Virus record (IMG/VR): IMGVR_UViG_3300042511_000879
Location: 172,072 to 236,071 of that record
Reading direction: 5' to 3' (one strand)
DNA length: 64,000 nucleotides
Below the pieces are notes generated by a model that did no database searches, was not told the DNA's origin, and saw only the letters and a list, made by a program, of their open reading frames with translations. The number at the start of each line of letters is the position of its first letter. The stretch's first letter is position 1. This document shows positions 7,818-39,263 of the stretch, in pieces. The position numbers and the translations under genes were made by a program.

Positions 7818-7819
7818 AC

Positions 7820-11987: not shown

Positions 11988-12172
11988 CAGTTGCTTTCTT
12001 AATTTCTTCAGTTAATATCCTTTCTAGTTCGGTAGTTGCATCAATTCCAAGATGCTGAAAGAATTCTGATTCTACTACTTCTACCGTTTGTAGTTCATAT
12101 TTAGAGCCTAAAATTGGGTCCTGAACTAATACTAATTGCTCTACAAATATTGTTTTTGGTTTTTTTGACATG

Positions 12173-23557: not shown

Positions 23558-23630
23558 TTTTAATTATAATGTAAATATAAACAAAAAACCCCAGACCGTA
23601 AAATCTGGAGTGTTAATGTTTTGTTAATTT
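23558..23630 (-). promoter_or_regulatory. Early-promoter cassette with hairpin
   Basis: CCAGA-TTTTACGG-TCTGG; contains the stop of 23624..24331. Confidence 0.8.
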
Positions 23631-26434: not shown

Positions 26435-26947
26435 CTACTTGTCGAAAAATAGATATTGTTTCCATTCGTCTGGAATGTTTTCGATATGTTTCATTAACAT
26501 AAGGAAATGAGGTCTTCTGGGTTGCGGAATGGTCTTACCGTACTCTTCCAGACTTAAGTCTGCTTTTTCACCATTGCATTTTTTGCAGGCAGTGGTAAGA
26601 TTTTCCCAGGTGTTAGGACCTCCTTTTGATTGGGGAATAACATGGTCTATTGTAAGTTTCTTTCTGTCGGATTCTTCGCAATAAACGCATTTATGGTTGT
26701 CTCTCTTAAAGACATTTTCTCTGGTTAGAGGAACGTTTCGGTGCTCAGTATAAATGTACTTTTGTACTTTTATAATCGAAGGCTTATAGATTTCAGCATC
26801 AGGGTCGCATAGACCAAATTTACAATCATGCTCCCAAATCACTTTTGCGTTTCCCTTATACACTATTGAAAATGCTCTAAGACTACTGATAACACTTCGA
26901 GGCATATAGCTCGAATCGATTACTAATGTTTTGTTAAAAATGTTCAT
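26435..26947 (-). CDS. HNH endonuclease
   Basis: RD..KCVYC, TIDHVIPQSKGG and WENLTTACKKCN..K motifs. Confidence 0.92.
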   Translation of the reverse strand: MNIFNKTLVIDSSYMPRSVISSLRAFSIVYKGNAKVIWEHDCKFGLCDPDAEIYKPSIIKVQKYIYTEHRNVPLTRENVFKRDNHKCVYCEESDRKKLTIDHVIPQSKGGPNTWENLTTACKKCNGEKADLSLEEYGKTIPQPRRPHFLMLMKHIENIPDEWKQYLFFDK

Positions 26948-26962
26948 GATATTAAATATTTG

Positions 26963-27048
26963 CGGAGAGCAGAGGTTACGATCCCCATCCGGTTCTCCCG
27001 GACCAACTGTTTAGCAAACAGCACTGAAGCCACTTCAGATTACTCTCC
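26963..27048 (-). tRNA. tRNA-Ser(GCT)
   Basis: Loop TTGCTAA, long variable arm, G73. Confidence 0.85.
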
Positions 27049-27058
27049 AAGTTAATTG

Positions 27059-27152
27059 CGGAAGATGACGGATTCGAACCCCCACACCATTTTAATGATC
27101 GACGCATTTCAAGTGCGCTGCCGGTACCCAGACTCTTTCGGCTTAATCTTCC
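27059..27152 (-). tRNA. tRNA-Ser(TGA), enlarged D-loop
   Basis: GCGCA-CTTGAAA-TGCGT, long variable arm, G73. Confidence 0.85.
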
Positions 27153-27162
27153 AATTTGTTTG

Positions 27163-27235
27163 TACCCCTAGAAGAATTCGAATCTCCATTTAACATCTTA
27201 GAAGGATGTTGCATTTCCATTTATGCTATAGGGGC
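27163..27235 (-). tRNA. tRNA-Arg(TCT)
   Basis: ACATC-CTTCTAA-GATGT. Confidence 0.9.
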
Positions 27236-27331
27236 ATAAAGCCAATCCCGTAGATTGGCCGCTCGGCTTTAGGTACCAAGTTTGCAAGAATAAATCTCTG
27301 ACCAGGACTTATACCCTCTGGGTATCGTCGT

Positions 27332-27402
27332 GTGTTTCCGGGTTTCGAACCCTGTTCTCTACATTCACAGTGTAGCACTTTACCGATTAAGCTAGAAACA
27401 CC
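27332..27402 (-). tRNA. tRNA-His(GTG)
   Basis: CTACA-CTGTGAA-TGTAG; extra 5' G. Confidence 0.88.
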
Positions 27403-27409
27403 ATATTAG

Positions 27410-27480
27410 TCTCGAATAGTGGAATCGAACCACTGCCCTTTGCATGTAAAACAAATACGCTACCATTACGCCAATTCGAG
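27410..27480 (-). tRNA. tRNA-Val(TAC)
   Basis: TTTGT-TTTACAT-GCAAA. Confidence 0.88.
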
Positions 27481-27544
27481 TTTTGAGAGGGTTAGGTATG
27501 GCTCACCTCTCCGTGACTGACGTCCTACCTTAACAGTCTAATTG

Positions 27545-27617
27545 TTCCCCCGGATGGCCTCGAACCATCTACCCCTCCGTTAAAAGCGGAGTGCCCGTCC
27601 ACATGAGCTTCGAGAGA
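27545..27617 (-). tRNA. tRNA-Lys(TTT)
   Basis: CTCCG-CTTTTAA-CGGAG. Confidence 0.88.
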
Positions 27618-27627
27618 TTGTATTTTG

Positions 27628-27699
27628 TTGCGATAAGGAATTTCGAAATCCTGACATCTCCAATATGAGCGGAGTACTCTTCCTCTGAGTTATATCGCA
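27628..27699 (-). tRNA. tRNA with CAT anticodon (Met or Ile2)
   Basis: CTCCG-CTCATAT-TGGAG; first 10 nt overlap the end of the endonuclease ORF. Confidence 0.8.
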
Positions 27700-28322
27700 T
27701 TTTTTAATTTTTCAAATTCACTTAATACAAATTTTTCATTATATCTACCAGAATCTTTAATTATATAAGGAACATATCCACATTTAATTATTTCTTGGAT
27801 TTTTATCCTATCTCTGTTTTGGACCTGTTCTAATGAATGATTTTTGGTAATTTTTTCATAGTGCCATTTACCATTCCATAAAATAGCAATTTTTATTGAA
27901 GGTATTATAACGTCTGCATCCCATCCATTAAATATACATTCATTTGTTAAAATATTTTTAAATTCATTTTGACATAATTCAGCAAATAGTATTTCATTTT
28001 TGCTTCTTTTATTTTGAGATTTAGCGCTATTTAATCCACCTCTTCTACTGTATTCTAAATGATTAGGATGTGCAACTGCACATGATTTAGAACAAAATTT
28101 AGAATTTCTTTTGTGCCATTTTACCGTAAATTCATTTTGACATGACATGCAACATAGTTTAACGTCAGGGTTTGCATTGGCACTTATTTTTTTAGAAACT
28201 TTTTCATTAATTTCTTTTCTTTTGGCTTTAGTACTAAAACCTCTAGAACATTTTGTTGAACAGAATCTGCCAGAACCATAAGTTCCTTCATGTTCGTTGT
28301 TGCAATTTTCACATGTTTTCAT
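27690..28322 (-). mobile_element. Putative free-standing homing endonuclease (Zn-finger repeats + Vsr/DUF559-like nuclease) inserted in the tRNA array
   Basis: CxxC...FCS..C repeats; WDADVII..KIAILWNGKWHY..RDRIK..GY; own GATATATA motif at 28327-28334. Confidence 0.7.
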
Positions 28323-28367
28323 ATTATATATATCTACATATTATTCGAACTTTTAAATTTGCCTTAG

Positions 28368-28440
28368 TAGTCTATGAAGGATTCGAACCCTCATCTTCCG
28401 ATCCGTAGTCGAATGTTACTATCCGTTGAACTAATAGACT
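28368..28440 (-). tRNA. tRNA-Arg(ACG)
   Basis: TTCGA-CTACGGA-TCGGA. Confidence 0.9.
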
Positions 28441-28445
28441 AATTG

Positions 28446-28520
28446 TGTCCTTGGGAGGGATCGAACCTCCATATCTCTCGGTTATGAGCCGAGCGCCTTC
28501 ACCAATTTAGCTACAAGAAC
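28446..28520 (-). tRNA. tRNA with CAT anticodon (Ile2 or elongator Met)
   Basis: CTCGG-CTCATAA-CCGAG. Confidence 0.88.
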
Positions 28521-28527
28521 CTTACAG

Positions 28528-28598
28528 CACGGGTGGAGGGATTTGAACCCCCATCGCTGGTGTTGGAGACCAGAATGCTACCGTTGCACTACACCCGT
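28528..28598 (-). tRNA. tRNA-Trp(CCA)
   Basis: CTGGT-CTCCAAC-ACCAG, G73. Confidence 0.9.
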
Positions 28599-28674
28599 AA
28601 ATATGTAGGATATCGCTTAACCTACCAGGTTTTACCCATTAAATCATATTAAATGACCCAAGACGATTTTTTTG

Positions 28675-28765
28675 TAGATATGGGCAGAATTGAACTGTCC
28701 GGCACGTCCATGTTCCTTGCAACTGCGAAGTACTGAGGATTGCTCTACCACTGAGCTACATATCT
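28675..28765 (-). ncRNA. tRNA-like RNA with expanded, non-canonical anticodon arm
   Basis: Perfect acceptor AGATATG/CATATCT, D arm GCTC-AGTGGTA-GAGC and T loop TTCAATT; about 35 nt replace the 17-nt anticodon arm. Confidence 0.7.
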
Positions 28766-28772
28766 GACCTAG

Positions 28773-28850
28773 TTGCGATTAGAGGAGTTGAACCTCTGGA
28801 GGGTATATCTACCGATACGGCTCATGAGACCGTCTCTGACCAACATCGCA
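28773..28850 (-). ncRNA. D-arm-less tRNA-like RNA, CAT anticodon, long variable arm
   Basis: TGCGAT/ATCGCA acceptor, 10-nt connector, ACGGT-CTCATGA-GCCGT, GGTA-GATA-TACC and AGAGG-TTCAACT-CCTCT. Confidence 0.65.
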
Positions 28851-28856
28851 TTTTAG

Positions 28857-29026
28857 AGCCACGTAACAGGGATCGAACCTGTCTACCGAATCTTGTCAAA
28901 TACTCTCATCTTGTCGACCTTTCAGAGGCATATTCTATTTAACTCTTCATGATTTTCCACCTTACGTCTAAAGTGTTCCATACATAACTAGTTAAAAGAT
29001 CCAGTTGTCACCATTGACTACGGACA
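28857..29026 (-). ncRNA. tRNA-like RNA (~170 nt) with ~100-nt insertion in place of the anticodon loop
   Basis: D arm GTC-AATGGT-GAC, 10-bp helix ACTGGATCTT/AAGATTCGGT and T arm ACAGG-TTCGATC-CCTGT. Confidence 0.6.
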
Positions 29027-29029
29027 TTT

Positions 29030-29105
29030 TGGTGGACCCTGTAGGAATCGAACCTACTCCTCTAGTTCTTCAGACTAGCGTACGCACCAGCTATACCAAA
29101 GGTCC
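29030..29105 (-). tRNA. tRNA-Phe(GAA), CCA encoded
   Basis: CTAGT-CTGAAGA-ACTAG; ends ACCA. Confidence 0.92.
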
Positions 29106-29185
29106 ATAAAAGTATAATATCCGTTATAATACCGACCCAGTTTCCCAGGACCAGGTTGGATTCGAACCAACATCTCTTTTTTACG
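29106..29185 (-). ncRNA. Circularly permuted tRNA-like RNA (3' half precedes 5' half)
   Basis: CGTAA AAAAG AGAT GTTGG-TTCGAAT-CCAAC CTGGTCC T GGGAAACT GGGTCGG TA D-arm CTTTT AT. Confidence 0.7.
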
Positions 29186-29267
29186 TGGGCAGCAGTGGAC
29201 TCGAACCACTCCCTTTAGAGACCGATTTTACAGACCGGCTGCCGTATCCGAACGACTTTTGCTACCC
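29186..29267 (-). tRNA. tRNA-Tyr(GTA)
   Basis: CCGGT-CTGTAAA-ATCGG, variable arm, A73. Confidence 0.88.
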
Positions 29268-29273
29268 TTATTG

Positions 29274-29347
29274 TAGTGATATTAGGAATCGAACCTAAAA
29301 CCTCTTCGGTATCAGCGAAGTGCTCTAACCAATTGAGCTATACCACT
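29274..29347 (-). tRNA. tRNA-Ile(GAT)
   Basis: CTTCG-CTGATAC-CGAAG. Confidence 0.9.
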
Positions 29348-29411
29348 AGTTGATTACCATCTGACTCTTTTCGAACTTTGCAGGCTCGTATCATTCCTTA
29401 ATGGTAATTTG

Positions 29412-29483
29412 CTCTTCCCCTAGGACTCGAACCTAGATAAAATGATTAACAGTCATCCGTAATAACCTTTATACGAGAGAAGA
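29412..29483 (-). tRNA. tRNA-Asn(GTT)
   Basis: GATGA-CTGTTAA-TCATT, U1-A72, G73. Confidence 0.9.
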
Positions 29484-29489
29484 ATTTTG

Positions 29490-29561
29490 AGGACCCTGAG
29501 AATTTCGAAATCTCGACCCGTTGCCTAACAAACAACCGCTCTGCCTCTGAGCTAAAGATCC
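29490..29561 (-). tRNA. Second GTT-anticodon tRNA with atypical identity elements
   Basis: GTTGT-TTGTTAG-GCAAC; G1-C72, U73. Confidence 0.7.
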
Positions 29562-29656
29562 AATTTAGTCTTTTGCTTACCTCTAAATAATTTACTTTGC
29601 CAACCGGGCCTTAGTTCCCGGCGCTTACCAATCATACTGGAGTAATTATTCCTTTG

Positions 29657-29730
29657 TTGCGGGTGAGGGACTCGAACCCCCGACCTTAAGCTTATGAGGC
29701 TCACGAGATACCAACTTCTACCAACCCGCT
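29657..29730 (-). tRNA. Initiator-like tRNA-Met(CAT)
   Basis: Unpaired 1:72 (A:A), GCGGG acceptor; anticodon stem lacks the three G-C pairs. Confidence 0.75.
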
Positions 29731-29735
29731 ATTTG

Positions 29736-29824
29736 TTTCCCTTGAAGGACTCGAACCTTCATCAACTTACGTTGAGCAACCACATTCAATAGTGGTCCAT
29801 GTTTGCCAATTTCACCAAAGAGAA
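29736..29824 (-). ncRNA. Class II (Leu-like body) tRNA-like RNA with 8-nt anticodon loop
   Basis: D arm GTG-AAATTGGCAAA-CAT, ACCAC-TATTGAAT-GTGGT, variable arm TCAAC-GTAA-GTTGA, A73. Confidence 0.65.
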
Positions 29825-29928
29825 AACTACTAAATAAATTTCGTCTGCAAAGTACTCTTTATCATATGTAGTAACCTTATAGTCCCGATAGAATTTGCAG
29901 ATTCTATACTTGCCTATCCAGTTTGTTG

Positions 29929-30002
29929 CCGAGATGACGGGACTCGAACCCGTGACCTTCGCCGTGACAGGGCGACATTGTTACCAACTCTACTACACCT
30001 CG
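29929..30002 (-). tRNA. tRNA-Asp(GTC)
   Basis: TCGCC-CTGTCAC-GGCGA, G73. Confidence 0.9.
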
Positions 30003-30011
30003 ATTATTTTG

Positions 30012-30087
30012 CGGTCCCGGAGGGTTTCGAACCCTCATTTTAGAGCAGTGACAGTGCAATTCCCCGACCAATGGGGCTCACAAGACC
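30012..30087 (-). tRNA. Second tRNA-Asp(GTC), weak anticodon stem
   Basis: GCA-CTGTCAC-TGC with only 3 bp; G73. Confidence 0.65.
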
Positions 30088-30092
30088 TTTTG

Positions 30093-30164
30093 TGGAGCTA
30101 CCGGGATTCGAACCCGGAATAACAGAATGCAAATCTATCGTGATGCCAATTTCACTATAACCCC
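30093..30164 (-). tRNA. tRNA-Ala(TGC)
   Basis: G3:U70; ATAGA-TTTGCAT-TCTGT. Confidence 0.9.
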
Positions 30165-30203
30165 AAATGCACTTCCTCGACTGTTTAGTGCGAACCAACG
30201 TAG

Positions 30204-30275
30204 TATTGCGTATGGGATTCGAACCCATGCCTCATCATAGAAAGTGATACGTGTTTACCCCTTCACTAACGCAAC
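30204..30275 (-). tRNA. tRNA-Glu(TTC), pyrimidine at position 37
   Basis: TATCA-CTTTCTA-TGATG. Confidence 0.85.
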
Positions 30276-30281
30276 ATTTAG

Positions 30282-30353
30282 AGCCTCTACAAGGAATCGA
30301 ACCCTGTTATCTTGTGTACAAAACAAGCGCATCACCATTTATGCTTTAGAGGC
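30282..30353 (-). tRNA. tRNA-Thr(TGT)
   Basis: CTTGT-TTTGTAC-ACAAG; G1-C72, C2-G71, U73. Confidence 0.9.
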
Positions 30354-30359
30354 AAATCA

Positions 30360-30428
30360 ATTAAAGTGGGTGTTTGAATCCCTTCTCCGCTTTATCAGTG
30401 CGGTGCTTTACTACTAAGCTAACTTTAA
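30360..30428 (-). ncRNA. Degenerate tRNA-Ile(GAT)-like element with reduced T arm
   Basis: TTAAAGT/ACTTTAA acceptor, GCTT/AAGC D stem, loop CTGATAA; T arm only GGG/CCC. Confidence 0.6.
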
Positions 30429-30434
30429 TCCTTG

Positions 30435-30507
30435 TACCCAGGGAGGGATTCGAACCCTCAATATCTAGTTCCTAAGACTAGCGTGTCTACCGTTCCACCA
30501 CCAGGGC
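30435..30507 (-). tRNA. tRNA-Leu(TAG) lacking the long variable arm
   Basis: CTAGT-CTTAGGA-ACTAG, Leu-type D loop, 4-nt variable region. Confidence 0.8.
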
Positions 30508-30566
30508 AAATCTAATTCTATGCTCACAATATGTAGTTCTATGAATTAGTAACAATCTCATCTGTG

Positions 30567-30642
30567 TCTGGATAGCAGGATTCGAACCTGCGTGCTCTAG
30601 CGTCCAAGGCCAGCGAGATAAACCGGGCTCCTCTACATCCAG
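30567..30642 (-). tRNA. tRNA-Pro(TGG)
   Basis: CTGGC-CTTGGAC-GCTAG; C1-G72, A73. Confidence 0.9.
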
Positions 30643-30652
30643 AAATTATTTG

Positions 30653-30723
30653 TTGCCTGTGGAGGTAACGATCCTCCTCCGATGCTGTCAAAGAGCATTG
30701 TACTACCTTTATACGAACAAGCA
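30653..30723 (-). tRNA. tRNA-Gln(TTG)
   Basis: ATGCT-CTTTGAC-AGCAT; U1-A72. Confidence 0.88.
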
Positions 30724-31100
30724 TTATTTCAAACTTGGTTTTTAACTAGGTTTCGGAGCGCATCACTTGTATTTTCAAAGTAACGGAACATTCTTAAAGC
30801 TTATTGAATGAACTGCCTAATTAAATTTCCAGTATCACCGCGAGGAGGTGTTTGATTGATACCGCTGAGCTTCGTTATTCTCCGGAGAATATTCTCCTTT
30901 GGATATTCGTTTCATGCTACTTCTATGTTTATCGGCCGATTCCATATTTTCGCCATTATACAATTTATTTCTTTTCGTCATCCCCTACTGCCCACTTGGA
31001 TGCGGTTACGAAAGCGTTCCAGTCTGTTCACGATACAATTTACAGTACCTCGAGAGCGATTTCCCGTTAAGAACCGATACTTGTGACCGGCAATCAATTT
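30724..31100 (-). ncRNA. Candidate ~375-nt structured ncRNA of unknown family
   Basis: Relatively GC-rich block between tRNAs with no credible ORF and several long-range complementarities. Confidence 0.5.
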
Positions 31101-31102
31101 AG

Positions 31103-31178
31103 TTATCATGACAGGATTCGAACCTGCGATTGGAAGACTATTACCTCTACCCGTGCTAACCATCTACACTACATAATA
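31103..31178 (-). ncRNA. tRNA-like RNA with non-canonical anticodon loop
   Basis: Good acceptor, D and T arms; loop GGTAATAG lacks the YU/anticodon/R pattern. Confidence 0.65.
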
Positions 31179-31242
31179 GCTACACTGTGGTATATCAATT
31201 TAATACCCTTAATATTTACTCAATGACGAGCAGTATAGTTTG

Positions 31243-31314
31243 AGCAGATAGGGAGAATCGAACTCCCATCTTTAGATTGGAAGTCTAAAGTAATGGCCAT
31301 TATACGATATCTGC
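31243..31314 (-). tRNA. tRNA-Gly(TCC)
   Basis: TTAGA-CTTCCAA-TCTAA, U73. Confidence 0.9.
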
Positions 31315-31330
31315 AAATTTGGTTATCAGT

Positions 31331-31342
31331 ATGTCAAAGAAC
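31331..31342 (-). promoter_or_regulatory. rrn-type boxA antitermination element
   Basis: GTTCTTTGACAT between the early promoter and tRNA-Gly. Confidence 0.65.
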
Positions 31343-31349
31343 CTTTGTT

Positions 31350-31422
31350 CTAATTTGTTATGTAAATATATAACAATTCTTTCAATCGGTAAAACTTTAA
31401 GTGTTAAAATTATGTTAAAGTT
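31350..31422 (-). promoter_or_regulatory. Early-promoter cassette driving the tRNA array
   Basis: Same repeat. Confidence 0.8.
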
Positions 31423-31430
31423 TTAATTTG

Positions 31431-31500
31431 AGTCTCCGTACAGAATCGAACTGTATCTGTAGCGTTTGCAATGCTACCGGTCGCCATAACCATCAGAGAC
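31431..31500 (-). tRNA. tRNA-Cys(GCA), compact D arm
   Basis: GTAGC-A-TTGCAAA-C-GCTAC; U73. Confidence 0.75.
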
Positions 31501-31510
31501 ATATAAAATC

Positions 31511-31547
31511 AAAAAAGGACCAATCATTTCTGAAAGGTCCTTTTGAA
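31511..31547 (-). terminator. Conditional (attenuator) intrinsic terminator
   Basis: GGACC-TT-TCA-GAAA-TGA-TT-GGTCC followed by T6; its 5' arm is also complementary to 31592-31603. Confidence 0.8.
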
Positions 31548-31567
31548 TATTTGTATGTTAATAGAGT

Positions 31568-31708
31568 TTAACTCATATTAACTAATTTTGTTTCAAAAGA
31601 ACCATAATGCTTCCAATCCCCATTATTTCTATAAGAGGCACATATCGGGCTACCTGTCGTAAGGACTGGTTGTTCCATAAAAATGATATGTTGTTGAATT
31701 GCTTGCAT
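31568..31708 (-). CDS. Putative attenuator leader peptide (46 aa, not in the ORF track)
   Basis: MQAIQQHIIFMEQPVLTTGSPICASYRNNGDWKHYGSFETKLVNMS*; A-rich leader; overlaps the antiterminator arm. Confidence 0.65.
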   Translation of the reverse strand: MQAIQQHIIFMEQPVLTTGSPICASYRNNGDWKHYGSFETKLVNMS

Positions 31709-31820
31709 TGTAATTGTTTTATTTGTTCTAATCTATATATAAGATTTAATTTTCTTATGTATATTATAGTATTATATATCTTTTTGTTTCATGAAATTCA
31801 ATGTAAATTCCATTTATTTT

Positions 31821-32180
31821 TTATTTATTTTTAGATGATTGGTTTTCAATTGAAAGGGCTTTGATATGTTTACAATCTCCTCTTCGGAAGCTCGATGCGG
31901 GACAATTACAACTCCAAACCCCTCTCTGAAACTTGACCAAATATTCTGACTTTCCGTTTGATGATGGTACCTTAAATTCTAGGTCCACCTGTGGTTCAGC
32001 CTTCAATTGGGTTGGAACTATTGGTTTCTCAATAATTATACTGTCATCGAACTCTACATCATCTCTAGTTGTTCCCTCATCTACAGGAATCCAACCCGGA
32101 CATATATAGGTACCAAACATGGTTCTCATAATTCCAAAGTCTTTAAAGACCCGGTCTCTAGGTATTTTATATTTAGCCAT
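31821..32180 (-). CDS. SWIM zinc-finger protein
   Basis: Y.V...WSCNCP...CKHI motif. Confidence 0.8.
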   Translation of the reverse strand: MAKYKIPRDRVFKDFGIMRTMFGTYICPGWIPVDEGTTRDDVEFDDSIIIEKPIVPTQLKAEPQVDLEFKVPSSNGKSEYLVKFQRGVWSCNCPASSFRRGDCKHIKALSIENQSSKNK

Positions 32181-32413
32181 TATCTTTCTAGGATTACGAA
32201 TTCACCGAATGCATTATCAAATGCTTGTAAGAGATTCTCATAGTCTCCGCTCATCATTTCGTTTATGAGTGCTTCACCTCTATCTTTCCATCCTAACTGG
32301 GTTGCAAATCGTTTAGCGTAAGCCATAAGAGCAAATGCATTTCCATCAGGACCTGTAAGGTCTATAATAATCGGGGTGGTTTTGACTTGTTTACTTCGTA
32401 TCATAATTGATGT

Positions 32414-32486
32414 TTTAATTATAATGTAAATATAAACAAAAAACTCCAGACCCGAAAGTCTGGAGTGTTAAAATTTTGTTAAAGTT
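32414..32486 (-). promoter_or_regulatory. Early-promoter cassette with hairpin
   Basis: CTCCAGAC-TTTCGG-GTCTGGAG-TTTTTG. Confidence 0.8.
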
Positions 32487-32489
32487 TAA

Positions 32490-32657
32490 TTACTTTACAG
32501 TGTCTACTTTTGTAGTGTCTACTGATACGGTGTCTACTTTTACTGAATCAACTTGTACTGTTGTTGAATCTGTTCCGGTAGTTGTAGTTTCTACTTGCTT
32601 ACAAGATGTAGCTACTAGTGTTGCCATAAATGCAATCGCTAAAAATACTTTTTTCAT
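32490..32657 (-). CDS. Small Thr/Asp/Val-rich lipoprotein (55 aa, not in the ORF track)
   Basis: MKKVFLAIAFMATLVATSC-KQVETTTTGTDSTTVQVDSVKVDTVSVDTTKVDTVK. Confidence 0.75.
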   Translation of the reverse strand: MKKVFLAIAFMATLVATSCKQVETTTTGTDSTTVQVDSVKVDTVSVDTTKVDTVK

Positions 32658-32720
32658 TTTGGTTTAGTTTAATGTTATTTAATTTAAAAGTTATATGATT
32701 TAAAACCTTTTTGTTTCAAA

Positions 32721-32900
32721 TTATTCTCTTTTCTTTTTATCAATAACTGACCATACTATTCCGATAAGAGTTGCAACTGCACCGATTCCAGTGTTAAGTG
32801 TTACTTCTGTTAAAACTCCTGAAGTTACAAGGTAACCTCCTACGAATGTTAAAATGTGTCTAACAAATCCTAATGTTTTGTCTAATGATTCTTGTGTCAT
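32721..32900 (-). CDS. Small two-TM holin-like protein (59 aa, not in the ORF track)
   Basis: LGFVRHILTFVGGYLV...IGAVATLIGIVWSVIDKKK. Confidence 0.6.
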   Translation of the reverse strand: MTQESLDKTLGFVRHILTFVGGYLVTSGVLTEVTLNTGIGAVATLIGIVWSVIDKKKRE

Positions 32901-32902
32901 AA

Positions 32903-33445
32903 TTATAAATCTATTTTTTGTTTAGAGCCATCTGTCATACTATAAGTAATATGCAGCGGTTTTAGTGAATGTTCTCCTGAATTTAGTATCTTTAAATATT
33001 CAGAACCTTTACCTGGTTTTAAGTAGGCAACAGTCATGTGGGGCATATAATCTGGGTAGTCCGTAGTGTGCGGAAGTTCACTAAGTGATTTATTTGCATT
33101 ATGAAGATTATCACCTTCCATGTCAAATTTTAGGACATCAAATTTATCATTTTCAAAAAGAGAAAGATTGTAGGCTTTGCACTCTCCGAGTTTAATCCCT
33201 TTTAATTTGTCTGCAACCTGATCAACAGTTACTTCAGGGTGAAGTCCGTATAATAAAGTACAGTGTGGTTCATTTTCAAGACCGTAACTTTCATCAGCTT
33301 CTACTGTGAAAATATCTTCAGGTCTTATTGATTGATGTAGAGTTGCCATTGCTGGAAAGTCAAAATATAACATTGCACAATTAAAATCATGTGTTGTTTT
33401 TATTTTTTCATTTAAGAACTCTTCGAATAGTTTAATTCTTTTCAT
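32903..33445 (-). CDS. 2H phosphoesterase (Acb1/T4 57B-like) with N-terminal capsid-targeting-like motif
   Basis: Two HxT motifs (PHCTLLYG, PHMTVAY); starts MKRIKLFEEFLNE. Confidence 0.75.
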   Translation of the reverse strand: MKRIKLFEEFLNEKIKTTHDFNCAMLYFDFPAMATLHQSIRPEDIFTVEADESYGLENEPHCTLLYGLHPEVTVDQVADKLKGIKLGECKAYNLSLFENDKFDVLKFDMEGDNLHNANKSLSELPHTTDYPDYMPHMTVAYLKPGKGSEYLKILNSGEHSLKPLHITYSMTDGSKQKIDL

Positions 33446-33950
33446 TATTTTCTTTTTTATTAATTTCATCCATTTTTTTCATAGCCCAATCAACTCCTTC
33501 ATCTCCACCCCAAATCAACCATGCAACATATCCATTGTCTTTCCACGGTTCTGATTTATGTTCTGGTGCTATTTTCGAGTTCTTTCTATGTCGATTAAAT
33601 TGTGCCATTCGGGAAACTACATCTTGCGAAAGTTTTTCTCCTTTTGCCAACTGATTTGCGCGTTGCCATCCGACTGGAGTACCTGCAGTTACTTCATCAC
33701 GTCCATATTGGTCTCTCCAATCCAGGGCCTTCTTTGCATTCTCCTTTGCGGCAGCAGGATAGTCATTGTAAGTATCTTCTGATTCTAAAACAACAGATTC
33801 TTGCGCGTCCTCCCAGTCCTCTTCATCGGGATAATCTTTATCACCTGGCTTTGCAGGTTTTTCGCCGCGCTTTCTTTTAGCCCATATATTGTCCCAAAGA
33901 CCCTTCTTTTTTTCGTCTAGGAACTCTTCAAATAATTTTACTTTTTTCAT
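33432..33950 (-). CDS. Putative head-internal protein
   Basis: MKKVKLFEEFLDE; GT.VGW.RANQLA and GYVAWLIWGGD.G..WA conserved phage motifs. Confidence 0.6.
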   Translation of the reverse strand: MKKVKLFEEFLDEKKKGLWDNIWAKRKRGEKPAKPGDKDYPDEEDWEDAQESVVLESEDTYNDYPAAAKENAKKALDWRDQYGRDEVTAGTPVGWQRANQLAKGEKLSQDVVSRMAQFNRHRKNSKIAPEHKSEPWKDNGYVAWLIWGGDEGVDWAMKKMDEINKKENNEKN

Positions 33951-34891
33951 TCTACTTCAAATCTTTTTGGGTCAAAGTCCAGGGTTTTCTTAATCATATA
34001 GTCACTCAATTTCTCGAGCTCGGTGTTAGCCGCTGGATTTACATCACGACCGTAAAAATCATTAAATAATTGTCTGTATGCCTGAACTGTAGAATCAAAT
34101 GGTACTCCCGGCTGACTGTTACTTTCAATTATATATAGTTTTCCAGATTTATCTTCCATAATATCAAAACAGATATATGGCAAGTCTGAGAATATTTTAC
34201 CGAATTTTTCAACTAGGTCATTAAATTTCTGTGGTATTTTGGTAACGTCCTTTTTAATGTATTTAAACATCATTTGTTCGTCTCCTTTTCCTTCTCCAGA
34301 TTTTGCTTTAGCATTCAATGGGTTTCTTTCCATCCAGAAAAATGGTTTACCCTTAAATGTAATCAATCTGTGTTCGGCTGCTTTGTCAATATATTCTGAA
34401 TAAACATCCAACTTCGAATGGTCTGCATCGTCCCATGATTTCTGGTCCTTAAAGATTTGAATACCAAGTCCTGAGTGTCCTTCTGCTGGTTTTCCAATTA
34501 ATGGGAATCCAATTTTTAGGGCATCTTTTTCATTATGCGCAGTTTTTGGGATGTTTTCATCACCATCAACCAACTTATGAAATTCTGCCTTGGAACCAGA
34601 TTGTTTGATATGTTCTGGTAGGTTATAGACATTTTCTTTTTTAATTAACCCTTCATCTAGGAGCTTTTGAGTTACTTTAGAATTGTATGTAAGGATTGGG
34701 TATTCTGAATTGATGTTAATGTCTTTGTAATTATCAAGTGTTACCTGTACAAAGAAATTATCTCCGGCGAAGTCTTTATAAGACCACCATCTATGCCCAC
34801 TATCAGGATTAATAGCCAAATAGATTTTATGCAAATCGGAATTGTCTTCCTTCTCTGCAATAAACTGTTCAAATAATTTAATTCTTTTCAT
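33947..34891 (-). CDS. ATP-grasp ligase with N-terminal capsid-targeting-like motif
   Basis: IPKT, FPLIGKP..GHSGLGI, EHR, FDIM and IIESNSQPG; starts MKRIKLFEQFIAE. Confidence 0.8.
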   Translation of the reverse strand: MKRIKLFEQFIAEKEDNSDLHKIYLAINPDSGHRWWSYKDFAGDNFFVQVTLDNYKDININSEYPILTYNSKVTQKLLDEGLIKKENVYNLPEHIKQSGSKAEFHKLVDGDENIPKTAHNEKDALKIGFPLIGKPAEGHSGLGIQIFKDQKSWDDADHSKLDVYSEYIDKAAEHRLITFKGKPFFWMERNPLNAKAKSGEGKGDEQMMFKYIKKDVTKIPQKFNDLVEKFGKIFSDLPYICFDIMEDKSGKLYIIESNSQPGVPFDSTVQAYRQLFNDFYGRDVNPAANTELEKLSDYMIKKTLDFDPKRFEVE

Positions 34892-34903
34892 GTATTATAT
34901 ATC

Positions 34904-35359
34904 TTATAAATACGAAGACGAAAGTTCTTTAAGTTGTTTTAATATAGTAGGGTCTTCAATCTTATGAATCACCTTCATTCCGTCTTGTTGTCGACGGATT
35001 CCAATTGCAGTTGTTCCAGAATTAAATTTAATTGTATGCAGTTTTGCGACCTTAGGGTCCATTTCAAAAATGCAACCCGCAAATTGGTCCTCTTGAGTTT
35101 GTAATGGGACTGAAACCCAATAAACCCGATGTGAATTCATAATCTTATCATGTTGGCTCTTTGGAAATGAAAACGAATCGTAATAGATTAAGGGTGCATT
35201 TGTTTTTACCTCAATGTTATATCCATCAATTATCATATCTTTATCCGAATCAAAAACGTTTAGGGATTCCTCGACCTGATGTCCGGAATCCCTAAAGTGT
35301 TTTGCAACTATCTTTTCTCCTAGCATTCCTAGAAGTACTCTTTTGTAATCAACTGCCAT
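34904..35359 (-). CDS. PD-(D/E)xK nuclease-like protein
   Basis: LGE...DMIIDG..IEVKT motif. Confidence 0.6.
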   Translation of the reverse strand: MAVDYKRVLLGMLGEKIVAKHFRDSGHQVEESLNVFDSDKDMIIDGYNIEVKTNAPLIYYDSFSFPKSQHDKIMNSHRVYWVSVPLQTQEDQFAGCIFEMDPKVAKLHTIKFNSGTTAIGIRRQQDGMKVIHKIEDPTILKQLKELSSSYL

Positions 35360-35360
35360 A

Positions 35361-36485
35361 TCAGTGAGAATCTCCTACGTTATTCTTTTCACCATAAATC
35401 AAGTAGTCTGGATTAATTACTTTCGCAACTTTTTGTCTTTCACCAGTAATGTGCTTGATTACAATTCCTTCATGTGGGACTTTAGTACCGTCGATGAAGT
35501 TACCGAAAACCAAACCATCTTGTACCTCTTGATTCCATAATCCTTCATAAAGAACTGTAACATGAGAGAGTTCTAGAACTTCCTCAACAATGTATTCTGT
35601 TAATTCAGGGTCCATATACTTTCCATCAATTGTTAAATCAAATGCAGCAAATCTAGTATCTTTTAAACCATATTCATAGTTCTTTTGAATTCCTGCACCA
35701 TAGATTTCACCATACAAAACAAAACCAGAACCAATTTCTTCGACTGATTTTCTTTTTACAGCTCTCCAAAGTTTTTCTTTGATACCATATTCTTCGGCAG
35801 TTGTTCTCCAAACGTCAGTTGAATAAAATCCTTGAGAATCAGATCCTTTCTCACAATTATGAGAACCATAAATGTACTCGTAGTTAACCCATTCGTCAGC
35901 AATTCTTAAGAATTTTCTTACTCTGTCCCAAAGGGTCAATTTAGATTTCTTTACAATACCATAACGTGCATTTGTTCCGTGCAATTTTCTGGTGATTTGA
36001 ACCTCATCCGCTTCAGTAAATAATCCAGCCACATTTTTCAAGTTTGGAAACTTGTAGTAGATATGGAAGTTTTGGTTATCTCTCCATTTGATTTTTCTAC
36101 CAGATGCTAATTGGATTTGTTTAACTGGTGGCTCATATTTAGTGATACCTAACTCTTCCATTAAATCCTTTCCTTCTACAATAGATTTTGCTCTAATATA
36201 TGTAACTGGAATGATTAAACATTCTGAATAGACTCCACGCAATTTTACAGTTCGGACTCTTGTACCTTTTCTTAGGTAGTTTGCAACTCCCATTTTTTCA
36301 GAAAGGGCTTCAGGTATTACTGCATCTGTTGTTGCAATTACTGTTAGGGAACCTTCTCTAAATTCACCTTTCTTTGTGATGGCATTCCATCCACCTGCGA
36401 TAACTAATTCGATGTTATCTGCTCCTTCGATTGCTCGAACTTCATTTATTTTTGCTACGTAGCAAACTGAATTTTGATTTTCCAT
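35361..36485 (-). CDS. ATP-dependent RNA ligase (DRB0094/Rnl2-like) with N-terminal OB-like domain
   Basis: GADNIE..GW, KLRGVYSECL, motif I KLHGTN, YGEIYG.GIQK, FD, EGIVIK and KVINPDYL. Confidence 0.9.
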   Translation of the reverse strand: MENQNSVCYVAKINEVRAIEGADNIELVIAGGWNAITKKGEFREGSLTVIATTDAVIPEALSEKMGVANYLRKGTRVRTVKLRGVYSECLIIPVTYIRAKSIVEGKDLMEELGITKYEPPVKQIQLASGRKIKWRDNQNFHIYYKFPNLKNVAGLFTEADEVQITRKLHGTNARYGIVKKSKLTLWDRVRKFLRIADEWVNYEYIYGSHNCEKGSDSQGFYSTDVWRTTAEEYGIKEKLWRAVKRKSVEEIGSGFVLYGEIYGAGIQKNYEYGLKDTRFAAFDLTIDGKYMDPELTEYIVEEVLELSHVTVLYEGLWNQEVQDGLVFGNFIDGTKVPHEGIVIKHITGERQKVAKVINPDYLIYGEKNNVGDSH

Positions 36486-36871
36486 TATATTAATTCATAT
36501 TTGGTTAATGTGTCTCTTCTCTCTTCTTTGTTAATTCCTATCAAATAGTTCTTAACGTTTTTAACGATTAACTTACTATAAAATGTTCCAATGTATGCTA
36601 ATGTTACCTTCTTTTTTTCTGACGGTCTTGTTTTTAAATCTATTTTAACATTTTTAACATCACTAATTGCGGATAGTATTTGATTTTTATAGCCAGAATT
36701 ACCATCGATTAAATTAATAACTCTATTTGTTAAAATACCATTAACAACTACCCGGATTTGATGGGGTTTATTACCTTTAAGATATGTGATTTGATACTCA
36801 TCATATCCAAGGTGTTTAAACCCTTCATCCGTCTTTTCGTATTTGGCAACTTTAAAAATGTTTTCCATCCT

Positions 36872-37279
36872 TTATAGTTTTACTTCAAATCTTTGTTTCA
36901 TTTTTTCTAATGTTTCTTGCGGAACATTGTGCTCATTTACCCCTCCATGTCGGTTTTCTACGATTAAGGAGTATACTCTATAGTCATATTTTTCAGCCAA
37001 ATCATAGTAGGCTTGCATTTCCCATTCTTGGGTAAATGTGTTTGCTACTGCTATTTTAAGTTCCATTTGCATAAACTCTTCACATCGGATTCTACACCAT
37101 TCATGCGCATCTTTTAATTTAGTTGCATTAAATTCATAAGTACCATTACTCATAAAATACTGGTCTGCTTCTAAACGATAACAATTTAATGATTCTGCCA
37201 GCGTAGATTTTCCAGCTCCTGGTAGTCCTCTTAATAAAAATAGTTCTTTACTCATACCATTGTGATTTTTGTAGTTCAT
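36872..37279 (-). CDS. P-loop kinase (AAA_33, polynucleotide-kinase-like)
   Basis: RGLPGAGKST, EADQYF, VANTF and HNVP..MKQRFE; lies two genes from the RNA ligase. Confidence 0.8.
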   Translation of the reverse strand: MNYKNHNGMSKELFLLRGLPGAGKSTLAESLNCYRLEADQYFMSNGTYEFNATKLKDAHEWCRIRCEEFMQMELKIAVANTFTQEWEMQAYYDLAEKYDYRVYSLIVENRHGGVNEHNVPQETLEKMKQRFEVKL

Positions 37280-37720: not shown

Positions 37721-37794
37721 TAAAATTAGATATGTAAATATAATCAATAGTTTAGAATCCTGAAAATCTAAAATGTTAATTTTTTGTTAAAGTT
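37721..37794 (-). promoter_or_regulatory. Early-promoter cassette copy
   Basis: Same repeat; contains the stop of 37787..38350 (...QKL*). Confidence 0.75.
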
Positions 37795-38350
37795 TTTGTC
37801 TTCGAAAGCTTAAACTTAATCGAGGTTCTACATCATTTTTTTCTTTTGGAATTCCATGTAAATATATGTCTTGCATACCAGGACCCATAAATAACATAGA
37901 ATTATGTTTTAGTACAACCTCGTATCCAATGTTGGTAAATCTATTAATCAATCTCATTTTACGATTAGAATTGCCGAGTGTAAGTGTCGCAACAATCATT
38001 GGTTGTTCTAGGTCTGGCATTTTGTCGGTATGATCCCTAAAAGAACAATTTCCACTATTATAATAATTAAGAGTGCATGTATTAAAATAATCAGCGTTAA
38101 CAGGTAACTTCTCCTCTAATTCTTTTTTAATTCTTAAAACAGTTTCAGAGTAGTTTTTTCGACCATACTTTTTGCCAAATAGTGTGTATGTAATACCCTT
38201 ATCGGTCATTCTACACATTTTTCTACCACCTCGACCGGGTTTATCAAAACTGGCTTCTACTTTAACACTATCAAAAAGATTTGGATAATTATCAATGTCC
38301 AATATATCTTCAATTAAATAGATGTTGTCAATTAGTTTTATTGCTTTCAT
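37787..38350 (-). CDS. AlkB-family 2OG-Fe(II) dioxygenase
   Basis: FNTCTLNYY, HTD, HGIPK and RLSLSFR motifs. Confidence 0.88.
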   Translation of the reverse strand: MKAIKLIDNIYLIEDILDIDNYPNLFDSVKVEASFDKPGRGGRKMCRMTDKGITYTLFGKKYGRKNYSETVLRIKKELEEKLPVNADYFNTCTLNYYNSGNCSFRDHTDKMPDLEQPMIVATLTLGNSNRKMRLINRFTNIGYEVVLKHNSMLFMGPGMQDIYLHGIPKEKNDVEPRLSLSFRRQKL

Positions 38351-38648: not shown

Positions 38649-39263
38649 TTACGACATCATATTTTCTTCGATGATTGCTTTACCTCTACGAATACGGTTT
38701 TTAATAGTTTGTAGCGGTAAGTCATGTTTTTCTGCGATTTCTTCGTACTTCATCTCATTAATCAAACGATCAATTACAATTTCACGGTACATTCCTTTCA
38801 GGTTTTCAATTTCAGTAAGAGCACGACCATACTTTGCCATAAGTTCGTCATCTTCCTCAAGGAAATCCTGTTCGGTTTTCATTACGTAATCTTCAATAGC
38901 ACCATTTAATCCTTTTGAGCCACTTACAAATTCACCATTCTCACTTACTTCAACACCGTAATCAGATAGGGCATCCAGGGAGGATTGTTTGTTTCTATTA
39001 TTGATATGTCCTAATGCATCATTGAATGCAATTCGGTACAACCATGTAGTGATCTGGTATTGTGGGTCATATTGATCAATTTTAGTCCACAATTTTGTTA
39101 AAGTGTTTACGGCAATATCTTCAGCCATTTCGCGATCTTTTACTATTTTATTAATATAAGTCGTAAGTCCTGGTTTTACTTTGTAAAAAAGTGCAGTAAA
39201 GTCTGCTTCAGAACGGGTTGATAAAAAATTCTCTGTTAATTCTCTGTAAGATTTAGATGCCAT
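38649..39263 (-). CDS. ECF-type sigma-70 family RNA polymerase sigma factor
   Basis: Region 2 AEDI...TWLYRIAFN; region 4 YEEIAE..PLQTIKNRIRRGK. Confidence 0.9.
   Translation of the reverse strand: MASKSYRELTENFLSTRSEADFTALFYKVKPGLTTYINKIVKDREMAEDIAVNTLTKLWTKIDQYDPQYQITTWLYRIAFNDALGHINNRNKQSSLDALSDYGVEVSENGEFVSGSKGLNGAIEDYVMKTEQDFLEEDDELMAKYGRALTEIENLKGMYREIVIDRLINEMKYEEIAEKHDLPLQTIKNRIRRGKAIIEENMMS

Follow-up and report, generated by a model that had tools for sequence, protein, structure and literature searches.

What does a phage gain by carrying tRNA genes for every amino acid near enzymes predicted to heal and seal broken RNA, and what are the structured RNAs that lie between those tRNA genes? 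The question is raised by the final 64 kb of a 236-kb virus contig in IMG/VR (record IMGVR_UViG_3300042511_000879; CheckV completeness ~77%), a stretch that we call the window and number from its first letter, and in particular by its positions 26435 to 37279, which hold a tRNA array, an RNA ligase and a kinase. An initial annotation had described this region as an integrated module in which replacement tRNAs, tRNA-mimicking decoys, a sensing leader and RNA repair act together against tRNA-targeting defenses. We find that the end-healing and sealing genes are tightly linked to one another and more loosely to the tRNA array, and that the set is modular, not obligate, and dispersed in the window's own lineage. 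The proposed integration stands to the extent that replacement and repair genes are coupled in relatives; it does not extend to an obligate unit, as the CCA-adding enzyme and a HAD-family phosphatase come and go. What is new are two conserved, undescribed structured RNA families, here named R1 and R2, among phage tRNA genes. With moderate confidence, we favor a reading in which the locus combines tRNA supply, CCA addition, and end healing and sealing, accompanied by structured spacer RNAs. The protein-coding genes that this reading concerns, or that the initial annotation had assigned to the module, lie in a window of ~34% GC whose genes are on the minus strand throughout:

3243-3818, minus strand: HAD-family 'Swiss-army-knife' RNA-repair phosphatase (HAD-SAK); Pfam HAD_SAK_2 (PF18143), E 5e-19
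4255-4659, minus strand: cREC, a cyclic-phosphate-processing receiver-like protein; Pfam cREC_REC (PF20274), E 2.5e-22, full profile
6533-7273, minus strand: class II tRNA nucleotidyltransferase of CCA-adding type (CCA enzyme), 246 aa; Pfam PolyA_pol (PF01743, E 2e-18) and RNA-binding domain
11484-11987, minus strand: PTH2-fold protein, with the fold in residues ~9-110 and a C-terminal helical extension
18566-19231, minus strand: MPE1, a second calcineurin-like phosphoesterase; weak Pfam Metallophos match
23624-24331, minus strand: MPE2, an MPPED2-like calcineurin-type metallophosphoesterase; Pfam Metallophos, E 1e-15; PDB 3rl4 (MPPED2), E 8e-41
32903-33469, minus strand: 2H phosphoesterase (Acb1/LigT-like), between array and ligase; Pfam Acb1 and 2_5_RNA_ligase2
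35361-36485, minus strand: ATP-dependent RNA ligase of the Rnl5 (Naegleria/Deinococcus) type; Pfam PF09414 and PF21189 (PHA02142 OB domain)
36872-37279, minus strand: stand-alone P-loop (AAA_33) kinase, 135 aa; Pfam AAA_33, E 5e-14; Walker A GLPGAGKS
37787-38350, minus strand: AlkB-like Fe(II)/2-oxoglutarate dioxygenase; Pfam 2OG-FeII_Oxy_2 (PF13532), E 3e-13

We mapped all open reading frames (ORFs) and all tRNAs of the window onto 80 related IMG/VR loci, which were retrieved via the ligase (62-100% identity), come from phages of 160-271 kb, and represent 68 distinct arrangements. The kinase is present in 56 of these arrangements and lies no more than 3 kb from the ligase in 51. MPE1 occurs in 35, beside the kinase and ligase (median distance, 1.1 kb), MPE2 is found near the ligase in 23, and cREC is present in another count of 23, 18 of them with less than 3 kb between it and the ligase. 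The 2H phosphoesterase is present in 15/68 arrangements, and the CCA enzyme lies ~1.5 kb or less from the ligase in 5/68. Arrays of at least five tRNAs occur less than 10 kb from the ligase in 34/68 arrangements, and in 19 of the 29 loci with both flanks of at least 8 kb; in 18 of these 34 it is found on the upstream side of the ligase and in 16 on the downstream side, and the side differs by lineage. The initial annotation had itself named co-occurrence across related phages as a check on its module, and the outcome is divided: kinase and ligase travel together, and the CCA enzyme and HAD-SAK are largely indifferent to how many tRNAs a genome carries.

In one relative, the complete 166-kb genome G008, a same-strand, uninterrupted run at positions 6851-11146 of locus L053 comprises cREC, HAD-SAK, MPE2, MPE1, a small ORF (orf88), the kinase and the ligase, and a 19-tRNA array lies a few kb upstream of this repair operon. 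The compact gene order in L053 probably resembles the ancestral state more than the dispersed order of the window does. HAD-SAK adjoins cREC in several relatives. Of the long records compared, cREC is present in 17 of 21, and in the comparison with tRNA counts (20-21 records) all 16 cREC-bearing records have tRNAs (5-31); both cREC and HAD-SAK are absent from the three long records that bear the ligase and no tRNAs. Made of separate small healing and sealing genes whose order has been reshuffled repeatedly, the set constitutes a natural experiment on which parts depend on each other. AlkB, which the initial annotation had counted as a member of the module, does not share this behavior: its linkage to the ligase is limited to the closest relatives (4/68 arrangements), and a Fpg/Nei DNA glycosylase gene lies less than 4 kb away, suggesting that the AlkB-like protein, which has the motifs HTD (residue 107), a later H and RLSLSFR (HxD...H...RxSxSFR), may serve DNA repair and not tRNA repair.

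The tRNA part of the locus consists of the main array, two serine tRNA genes that adjoin it, and spacer RNAs that we describe further below:

27162-31500, minus strand: main tRNA array, 26 ARAGORN genes with spacer RNAs in between
ARAGORN genes of the array, first half: Arg-UCU, His, Val, Lys, three CAU, Arg-ACG, Trp, Phe, Tyr, Ile, two Asn
ARAGORN genes of the array, second half: Ser-like, two Asp, Ala, Glu, Thr-UGU, Leu-UAG, Pro, Gln, Thr-GGU, Gly, Cys
27059-27152, minus strand: tRNA-Ser(UGA), type II, imperfect T stem; Rfam tRNA-Sec-like match of 30 bits; anticodon loop CTTGAAA
26963-27048, minus strand: probable tRNA-Ser(GCU), 86 nt, type II; cloverleaf, anticodon loop TTGCTAA, N73-C74-AAA trailer
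29735-29824, minus strand: Ser-like type II tRNA, 90 nt; ARAGORN call '???', anticodon ttga; 8-nt anticodon loop TATTGAAT

The count of 26 tRNAs in the initial annotation is exactly that given by ARAGORN, and 24 of the 26 reach the Rfam RF00005 gathering score, as does an additional segment at 30360-30428. The 26 genes serve 19 amino acids and include one Ser-like gene with a 4-base anticodon call. Serine is supplied by the two type II genes that adjoin the array downstream, so that all 20 amino acids are covered, as had been claimed. ARAGORN labels the L011 homologue of 27059-27152 as Ser-tga; the gene at 26963-27048, whose T loop is unusual (ATCGTAA), is called by neither ARAGORN nor Rfam in this genome, and its nhmmer homologue in locus L034 is tRNA-Ser(gct) by ARAGORN. 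A tRNA-Leu(UAA) gene lies 7.5 kb ahead of the window start, and with it the phage has a near-minimal complete decoding set in which U34 anticodons are dominant. As side observations, the Leu(UAA) gene belongs to a segment at 164461-168251 of the same record (G000), upstream of the window and apart from the main array, which also holds two odd 'Pro-like' calls of 85-87 nt with long variable regions and, alongside, a weak fourth match to the tRNA model. L011 and L015 both keep the 8-nt loop TATTGAAT of the Ser-like tRNA, and the anticodon stem that carries it shows a compensatory change; the loop could mean quadruplet or otherwise altered decoding, or a loop changed to evade a nuclease. The ORFs read normally with table 11, with no signs of recoding.

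Only tRNA-Phe (29030-29105) encodes its CCA end, in agreement with the initial annotation. The other genes end at N73-C74, followed by an A/T-rich trailer, mostly C|AAA, and CCA must therefore be added to their transcripts after transcription. The universally encoded C74 may be a signal for 3' processing or for CCA completion.

All the enzymes of the module named by the initial annotation apart from the PTH2-like one, namely the RNA ligase, the Pnk-like kinase, the HAD phosphatase, cREC, the CCA enzyme and AlkB, as well as the HNH endonuclease by the array, are supported by Pfam, and to these we add three further, likely end-processing enzymes, the 2H protein (32903-33469), MPE2 (23624-24331) and MPE1 (18566-19231). 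Catalytic motifs are intact in all enzymes examined. The ligase has a PF21189 OB domain in residues 10-94 and a PF09414 nucleotidyltransferase domain in residues 160-357, with motif I KLHGTN (KxHGxN), and matches PDB 5cot (NgrRnl) with an E of 8e-18 over the N-terminal domain. By this domain make-up, we assign it to the Rnl5/NgrRnl family, not to the T4 Rnl1 type of anticodon-loop ligase. The Naegleria and Deinococcus ligases, NgrRnl and DraRnl, seal 3'-OH/5'-PO4 nicks with an RNA 3'-OH strand. The Rnl5-type ligase of the window is the sole RNA ligase detected in the 236-kb record: searches of that record for RtcB or Rnl1 as further ligases found none, and PF09511 (RNA_lig_T4_1) had zero matches in the ~77%-complete record, as it did in control genomes. 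Directly downstream of the ligase, a 151-aa ORF (34904-35359, minus strand) without a Pfam match carries a PD-(D/E)xK-like motif (D...IEVK); its place next to the ligase is conserved in 13 loci, and it may encode a nuclease that partners the ligase.

We presume that the AAA_33 protein is a polynucleotide 5'-kinase, given its Walker A motif and its coupling to the ligase. It is not part of a bifunctional enzyme of the T4 Pnkp type, as the kinase stands alone and HAD-SAK is encoded by a gene of its own at a distance of 33 kb. HAD-SAK has its DxD nucleophile motif at residue 7 (DNDGV), and cREC has its acidic residues at 7-8 (DD) and 43-45 (DHD). The CCA enzyme contains all the head motifs (GGxxRD, DxD, RRD, DDPLR) and consists of head and neck domains only, apparently without the body and tail that bind the tRNA elbow. 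The 2H protein scores 31.2 bits against Acb1 (cut-off, 27), has HxT motifs at 69 (HCT) and 144 (HMT), and shows a weak PDB match to Acb1. PDB sequence searches with the kinase and MPE1 were uninformative. Regarding the protein at 11484-11987, which had been described as PTH2-like, the Pfam PTH2 model (PF01981) finds nothing at E<=0.01 in the protein or at E<=1 in a six-frame search of the genome, and the likeness resides in the predicted fold. An AlphaFold2 model, computed from a 23-sequence alignment drawn from more than 3,500 unannotated homologues, has a mean confidence score (pLDDT) of 82, and the Atlas clusters nearest to the protein carry PTH2. The top 14 Foldseek matches in PDB, including 2zv3, 3erj, 1q7s and 1xty, are all PTH2-family structures (probability 0.82-1.00; target-normalized template-modeling score 0.43-0.67), and the model-based assignment to the PTH2 fold therefore stands.

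Taken together, these genes suggest how the locus might work, with every biochemical activity, substrate and anti-defense role predicted from homology and conserved linkage. The ~4.5-kb polycistronic array would supply a near-complete set of one or two tRNAs per amino acid, mostly with U34, and this pool would allow infection to continue when host tRNAs are cleaved by defense nucleases or degraded during takeover. The short CCA enzyme of the phage would complete CCA-less transcripts and could also rebuild clipped 3' tails. The 2H, cREC, HAD-SAK and calcineurin-type phosphoesterases would open and remove cyclic or linear 2',3'-phosphate ends, the P-loop kinase would phosphorylate 5'-OH ends, and the Rnl5-type ligase would seal the resulting 3'-OH/5'-P break. 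The PTH2-fold protein may recycle stalled peptidyl-tRNA, and the spacer RNAs, including R1, R2 and others, would come free as side products when RNase P and 3'-end processing mature the tRNAs.

Several observations weigh against this account. Ligases of the Rnl5 type prefer duplex nicks with an RNA 3'-OH strand, as opposed to the anticodon-loop breaks joined by T4 Rnl1. Because the ligase was the means of finding the relatives, and because these share descent, the co-occurrence of ligase and tRNAs is biased and the counts are not independent. The CCA enzyme (8/20) and HAD-SAK (10/20-21) of the long relatives are largely independent of tRNA number, each occurring in just about half of the tRNA-rich ones, and the window's genome has the parts dispersed over 34 kb, with NAD-salvage and DNA-repair genes in between. 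The RNA evidence for the array, presented below, consists of assembled contigs, for which DNA carry-over cannot be fully excluded. Finally, several of the phosphoesterases have equally good other targets: the 2H protein resembles the Acb1 protein that counters the cyclic-oligonucleotide-based anti-phage signaling system (CBASS), MPE2 is similar to MPPED2, a phosphodiesterase of cyclic nucleotides, and for cREC an action on ADP-ribose cyclic phosphates has been predicted as well (PMC9503650).

A different explanation is that the array serves mainly codon supply and host independence, A/T-rich codons, and the shutdown and degradation of host RNA that the phage brings about, demanding a pool of the phage's own, with the repair enzymes acting as RNA housekeeping. 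This is a real possibility, although a doubtful one as a full explanation, and it is not mutually exclusive with the favored combination of supply and repair. Codons ending in A or T make up 74% of the total, and in most four-fold boxes NNA ranks first or close to first; the U34-dominated set fits this codon use. The set is also complete and not restricted to known nuclease targets, and decay of host tRNAs is documented for T4-like infections (PMC9697503, in a passage citing Yang et al. 2021). However, codon supply leaves unexplained the linkage of the array with healing and sealing enzymes across rearranged relatives. Moreover, the nearest isolates infect Sphingomonas, Tenacibaculum and Flavobacterium, and the latter two are low-GC bacteria, which would weaken any codon mismatch between phage and host.

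The phosphoesterases invite another explanation, in which the 2H, MPPED2-like and cREC proteins, together with the products of the NAMPT, PRPP (phosphoribosyl pyrophosphate)-synthetase-like and Macro-like genes, act in counter-signaling and not on RNA ends, destroying cyclic-nucleotide or ADP-ribose immune signals and restoring NAD+. The best Pfam and PDB matches of the 2H protein are to the anti-CBASS Acb1, the match of MPE2 to MPPED2 is very strong (E 8e-41), NAD-salvage genes share the island, and cREC has been predicted to process either RNA 2',3'-cyclic ends or ADP-ribose cyclic phosphate (PMC7824862, in its treatment of this domain; PMC9503650). Nevertheless, we regard this role as unlikely, given that cREC, HAD-SAK, MPE1 and MPE2 share an operon with the kinase and the RNA ligase in L053, that the three tRNA-free records lack cREC, and that the HAD_SAK_2 family was defined from RNA-repair contexts, according to the portion of PMC7824862 that deals with it.

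What, then, lies between the tRNAs? We extracted and folded each spacer of the array and sought homologues in relatives with nhmmer. Two of the RNAs found are conserved well enough for covariation analysis on many sequences:

30358-30430, minus strand: R1, tRNA-shaped conserved RNA; 8-bp acceptor stem, D arm without GG, T arm, variable fourth arm
27236-27329, minus strand: R2, 94-nt RNA of four hairpins, flush between tRNA-His and tRNA-Arg(UCU); not tRNA-shaped

A covariance model of R1, built on six sequences, gives one strong match per record (63-95 bits) in 23 of 38 related records, the next best match scoring no more than 29 bits. Exact-pattern scans of IMG/VR contigs later widened the set, the first pattern adding one new contig and the second ~30, to 28 distinct sequences from 39 loci. 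In this set, 97% of cells are paired, and compensatory changes are seen at 7 of 19 pairs, a level of covariation reached by 0/500 shuffles, and shifting the partner column cuts pairing to 26-48%. Sequence hardly varies in the 8-bp acceptor stem or in the D and T arms; the T arm consists of three Watson-Crick pairs flanked by A.A, and the T loop is TACGAAA in most members. In the fourth, 'anticodon' arm, every pair covaries, and the loop differs in both sequence and length, its variants including CTGATAA, GGCTAA, a TTCG-capped extended stem and a 20-nt insertion. R1 would be annotated as a tRNA because of its RF00005 score of 45 bits. Across the 28 members, however, neither a 7-nt anticodon loop nor a conserved anticodon is kept, and the G18G19 and G53-C61 of canonical tRNAs are absent, as is U55 in most members. 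These features indicate that R1 is a conserved, cloverleaf-shaped and non-decoding RNA under selection for structure. Its presence across the long relatives shows no pattern with respect to the CCA enzyme or HAD-SAK.

R2 lacks a cloverleaf, and its hairpin loops are conserved. Its covariance model matches once per record in 11 of 36 relatives (55-110 bits); 92% of cells are paired, compensatory changes occur in 18 of 30 pairs, none of 500 shuffles equaled this covariation, and controls in which the partners were slid gave 33-42% pairing. R2 thus appears, from its pattern of base changes, to be under selection for structure as well. In 9 of the 11 loci it abuts tRNA calls on both sides (~2 nt), with neighbors that differ by locus, and since it is flush with the flanking tRNAs, ordinary 5' and 3' processing of these tRNAs would release it. 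Neither R1, R2 nor the other spacer RNAs belong to any Rfam family, and blastn searches with R1 and with R2 against 50,697 GenBank phage records returned no matches. By analogy with the T4 RNAs RNAC and RNAD, whose position in the tRNA cluster is comparable, our interpretation is that R1 and R2 would be stable RNAs freed by tRNA processing, with their structure under selection. Some 'spacers' of this phage tRNA array are conserved structured RNAs, including a tRNA-shaped non-decoder; RNAs of this sort are usually ignored or misannotated as tRNAs.

A bolder step, which we consider improbable, is to view R1 and R2 as new families of phage noncoding RNA that use tRNA processing for their biogenesis and act in trans, as tRNA-body mimics, scaffolds or regulators. 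Under such a trans-acting role, R1 would mimic the body of a tRNA and not its anticodon, and would titrate a host factor that recognizes the acceptor/T-arm region, for instance an immune nuclease or toxin targeting the tail or body; alternatively, it would be a cofactor or scaffold for the phage CCA and repair enzymes. For R2, the corresponding role would be that of a regulatory RNA, cut out precisely by RNase P and 3' processing of the flanking tRNAs.

The other spacer elements have narrower distributions:

28675-28765, minus strand: tRNA-like RNA; RF00005 36 bits; canonical acceptor, D and T arms
29106-29184, minus strand: spacer element; canonical T arm, then an acceptor-like hairpin; compensatory T-arm change in L079
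29562-29655, minus strand: R3, stem-closed three-way RNA; D-like and anticodon-like arms, no T arm, conserved 3' tail
29348-29410 and 31179-31241: stem-closed elements

R3 shows compensatory changes in 4 of 19 pairs among three sequences, and its model matches 6 of 36 records, every one in the window's own sub-lineage. For the elements at 29348, 31179, 29106, 27481 and 30508, nhmmer yielded 3-4 distinct sequences each, a number that does not allow a real covariation test; a few compensatory changes are seen in each of the first three. Where a tRNA would have its anticodon arm, the element at 28675-28765 has a longer stretch that contains a variable hairpin, and L011 and L016 carry variants of it; the element is confined to close relatives and, from its sequence, may be a broken tRNA. 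The initial annotation had listed seven tRNA-like RNAs. We count about seven or eight, including the Ser-like gene at 29735-29824 and, beyond the tRNA-like RNAs proper, the two stem-closed elements; among them R1 is indeed a conserved tRNA-shaped RNA, and the first two (26963-27048 and 27059-27152) are the true serine tRNAs described above.

RNA sequencing data from lakes bear on both the expression and the turnover of these elements. In four lake metatranscriptomes, contigs cover the array at 99-100% identity, spacers included (29058-29247, 29111-29214, 29541-29732). Depth in the RNA libraries is almost nil over the HNH-like ORF embedded in the array (27636-28371), which argues for real transcripts over DNA carry-over, although it does not prove them. 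The contigs carry no information on strand or molecule ends, and processing sites are thus inferred. Metatranscriptome contigs from other lakes join across 26950-27056, 29106-29185, 30363-30432 and 28769-29030, revealing co-occurring strains without the Ser-GCU gene, the 29106 element, R1 or a 264-nt spacer (28769-29030), respectively. Evolution of the array thus proceeds cassette by cassette, through gains and losses.

This turnover raises the possibility that recombination and homing endonucleases have left the spacer elements behind, either as tRNA pseudogenes in decay or as inert filler. In favor of it, strains differ in which elements they carry, the array has HNH genes within it, and the elements at 28675-28765 and 29106-29184 look disrupted or partial and are found in close relatives only. 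Pseudogenes, however, would not keep their pairing, and R1 and R2 combine many compensatory changes with a sharp separation of scores across relatives whose ligases are ~65-75% identical, so that we find this origin improbable for the spacers as a whole. Least probable is the decoy model of the initial annotation, in which tRNA-like RNAs soak up tRNA-targeting nucleases in concert with a sensing leader: R1 is conserved, single-copy, tRNA-shaped and structurally selected, and the presence or absence of elements at the strain level fits arms-race turnover, yet the anticodon loop, the recognition site of such nucleases, is the least conserved part of R1 and is replaced by a tetraloop-capped stem in some members, so that R1 would not be a decoy for nucleases that read this loop, its lack of G18G19, G53-C61 and mostly of U55 means that the tRNA elbow is not copied, two of the proposed mimics are ordinary serine tRNAs, R2 is not tRNA-shaped, and Rfam detects no leader, riboswitch or T-box at gathering score. 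A sub-threshold match to an L10 leader at 32428-32500 was rejected, as it overlaps a terminator-like hairpin at 32443-32466.

Further features accompany the array and the repair genes:

26435-26947, minus strand: HNH homing-type endonuclease at the 3' edge of the array; Pfam HNH/HNH_5, E 1e-15
27690-28322, minus strand: second HNH-like endonuclease ORF, within the array; PHROG 559/1271 'HNH endonuclease', E 3e-8
31315-31429, minus strand: copy of a dispersed intergenic repeat between tRNA-Cys and tRNA-Gly; hairpin and promoter-like A/T-rich segment
108-788, minus strand: RNase T/DEDDh-like exonuclease
38649-39263, minus strand: sigma-70-like factor (regions 2 and 4)
40961-41440, minus strand: guanylate kinase
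41449-42318, minus strand: Fpg/Nei DNA glycosylase

Homologues of the HNH gene at 26435-26947 lie less than 10 kb from the ligase in 27 of the 80 related loci, mostly in or beside the array; the second HNH-like ORF, the one with RNA-library depth near zero, has zero Pfam matches. The intergenic repeat (~87 nt) is present in at least 20 copies in the genome in nearly uniform orientation (for example, at genome positions 176737, 191309 and 188212), and has 29 nhmmer matches in related loci, often two or three per tRNA array. It is probably a phage promoter or terminator cassette that marks an internal start within the array. A scan of the array for sigma-70 promoters gave a site count not above that of shuffled sequence. 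Elsewhere in the window, a cluster of NAD+/ADP-ribose genes (7350-13045, minus strand) encodes nucleoside 2-deoxyribosyltransferase-like, GT2 glycosyltransferase, NAMPT, weakly Macro-like, PTH2-fold and PRPP-synthetase-like proteins, and is comparable to the NAD+-salvage counter-defense sets of jumbo phages. Two large ORFs, at 20252-22579 (775 aa) and 47596-50286 (896 aa), both on the minus strand, are without a Pfam match.

The same contig has been found repeatedly in lake-water metagenomes. The record contains a T4-type large terminase, a tail sheath, a neck protein and a gp44-like clamp loader, and this set places the phage among the T4-like myoviruses. The isolates nearest by terminase, Sphingomonas phage PAU, Tenacibaculum phage PTm1 and Flavobacterium phage MaF61, are just 30-34% identical, and a megablast search of the region against the same 50,697 GenBank phage records returned zero matches. 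The phage is an uncultured T4-like jumbo myovirus of lake water, and we think it reasonably probable that the region is the translation-maintenance part of its accessory gene island.

How does this locus compare with systems already described? A survey of jumbo phages (Iyer, Anantharaman, Krishnan, Burroughs and Aravind 2021, PMC7824862) describes, in its sections on RNA repair and tRNA provisioning, both as responses to host attack on translation. There it names RNA ligases, polynucleotide kinases, HAD 'Swiss-army-knife' phosphatases, 2H proteins and the newly defined cRec, which has conserved acidic residues, is never paired with a histidine kinase and is operonically linked to RNA ligases; it also cites Burroughs and Aravind 2016 for RNA-repair systems. 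As in those systems, arrays of ~20-30 tRNAs, a ligase, a kinase, HAD, cRec and 2H proteins and NAD+ salvage occur in the same genomes. Since the same components and role have been published for jumbo phages, the protein and tRNA part of our locus is an already-known kind of system. It differs from the set covered in those sections in that the lineage is uncultured and outside that survey, in that the enzymes are all stand-alone and dispersed in this genome, and in its conserved non-decoding array RNAs, none of which those sections describe for jumbo-phage arrays. Phage tRNAs have been shown or argued to overcome tRNA-cleaving defenses (PMC11555353, PMC10264068), and our data add an abundant lineage of uncultured freshwater phages to this known counter-defense strategy, in which a phage would bring its own tRNAs and mend cut ones.

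A follow-up study treats phage neighborhoods containing ligase, cREC, kinase and calcineurin-type esterase (PMC9503650). In those of the Escherichia phage V5 and Proteus phage Mydo type, a ligase, cREC, a nucleotide kinase and a calcineurin-like phosphoesterase occur together, as they do in relatives of our phage; those neighborhoods center on a sirtuin and a T4-like tRNA ligase with MazG, whereas the ligase family in our locus is a different one. Among RNAs, R1 recalls the bacterial Y RNAs (YrlA) in joining a tRNA-like acceptor/D/T module to another helix in place of the anticodon arm, in a genome with RNA repair. Unlike YrlA, which is partnered by Ro/Rsr and lies near RNA-repair operons, R1 is without a long Ro-binding stem, and a Y-RNA-like role was rejected, the Rfam YrlA match being insignificant (16.9 bits, E 9.8) and a TROVE/Ro gene being absent from the 236-kb record.

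A further comparison is with T4 itself. Like the T4 Pnkp/Rnl1 system that answers PrrC, the locus would heal ends by 5'-kinase and 3'-phosphatase activities and then seal them, it comes with its own tRNAs, and the phage shares a T4-like terminase, sheath and clamp loader. Unlike that system, it has an Rnl5-type ligase, separate kinase and phosphatase genes, and additional cREC, 2H and calcineurin-type esterases. The T4 RNAs RNAC and RNAD are encoded inside the T4 tRNA cluster, are processed with the tRNAs, and have been unexplained since the 1970s. R1 and R2 occupy the same kind of position as these species 1 and 2 RNAs, within a tRNA cluster; a sequence relation was not detected (Rfam, and blastn of R1 and R2 against GenBank phages), and they differ in form, R1 being a four-arm cloverleaf with a variable fourth arm and R2 sitting flush between tRNAs. 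The function of RNAC and RNAD is still unexplained (PMC9697503), and R1, with its 28 distinct sequences and clear covariation, and R2 offer defined, testable candidates for the role of RNAs of this type.

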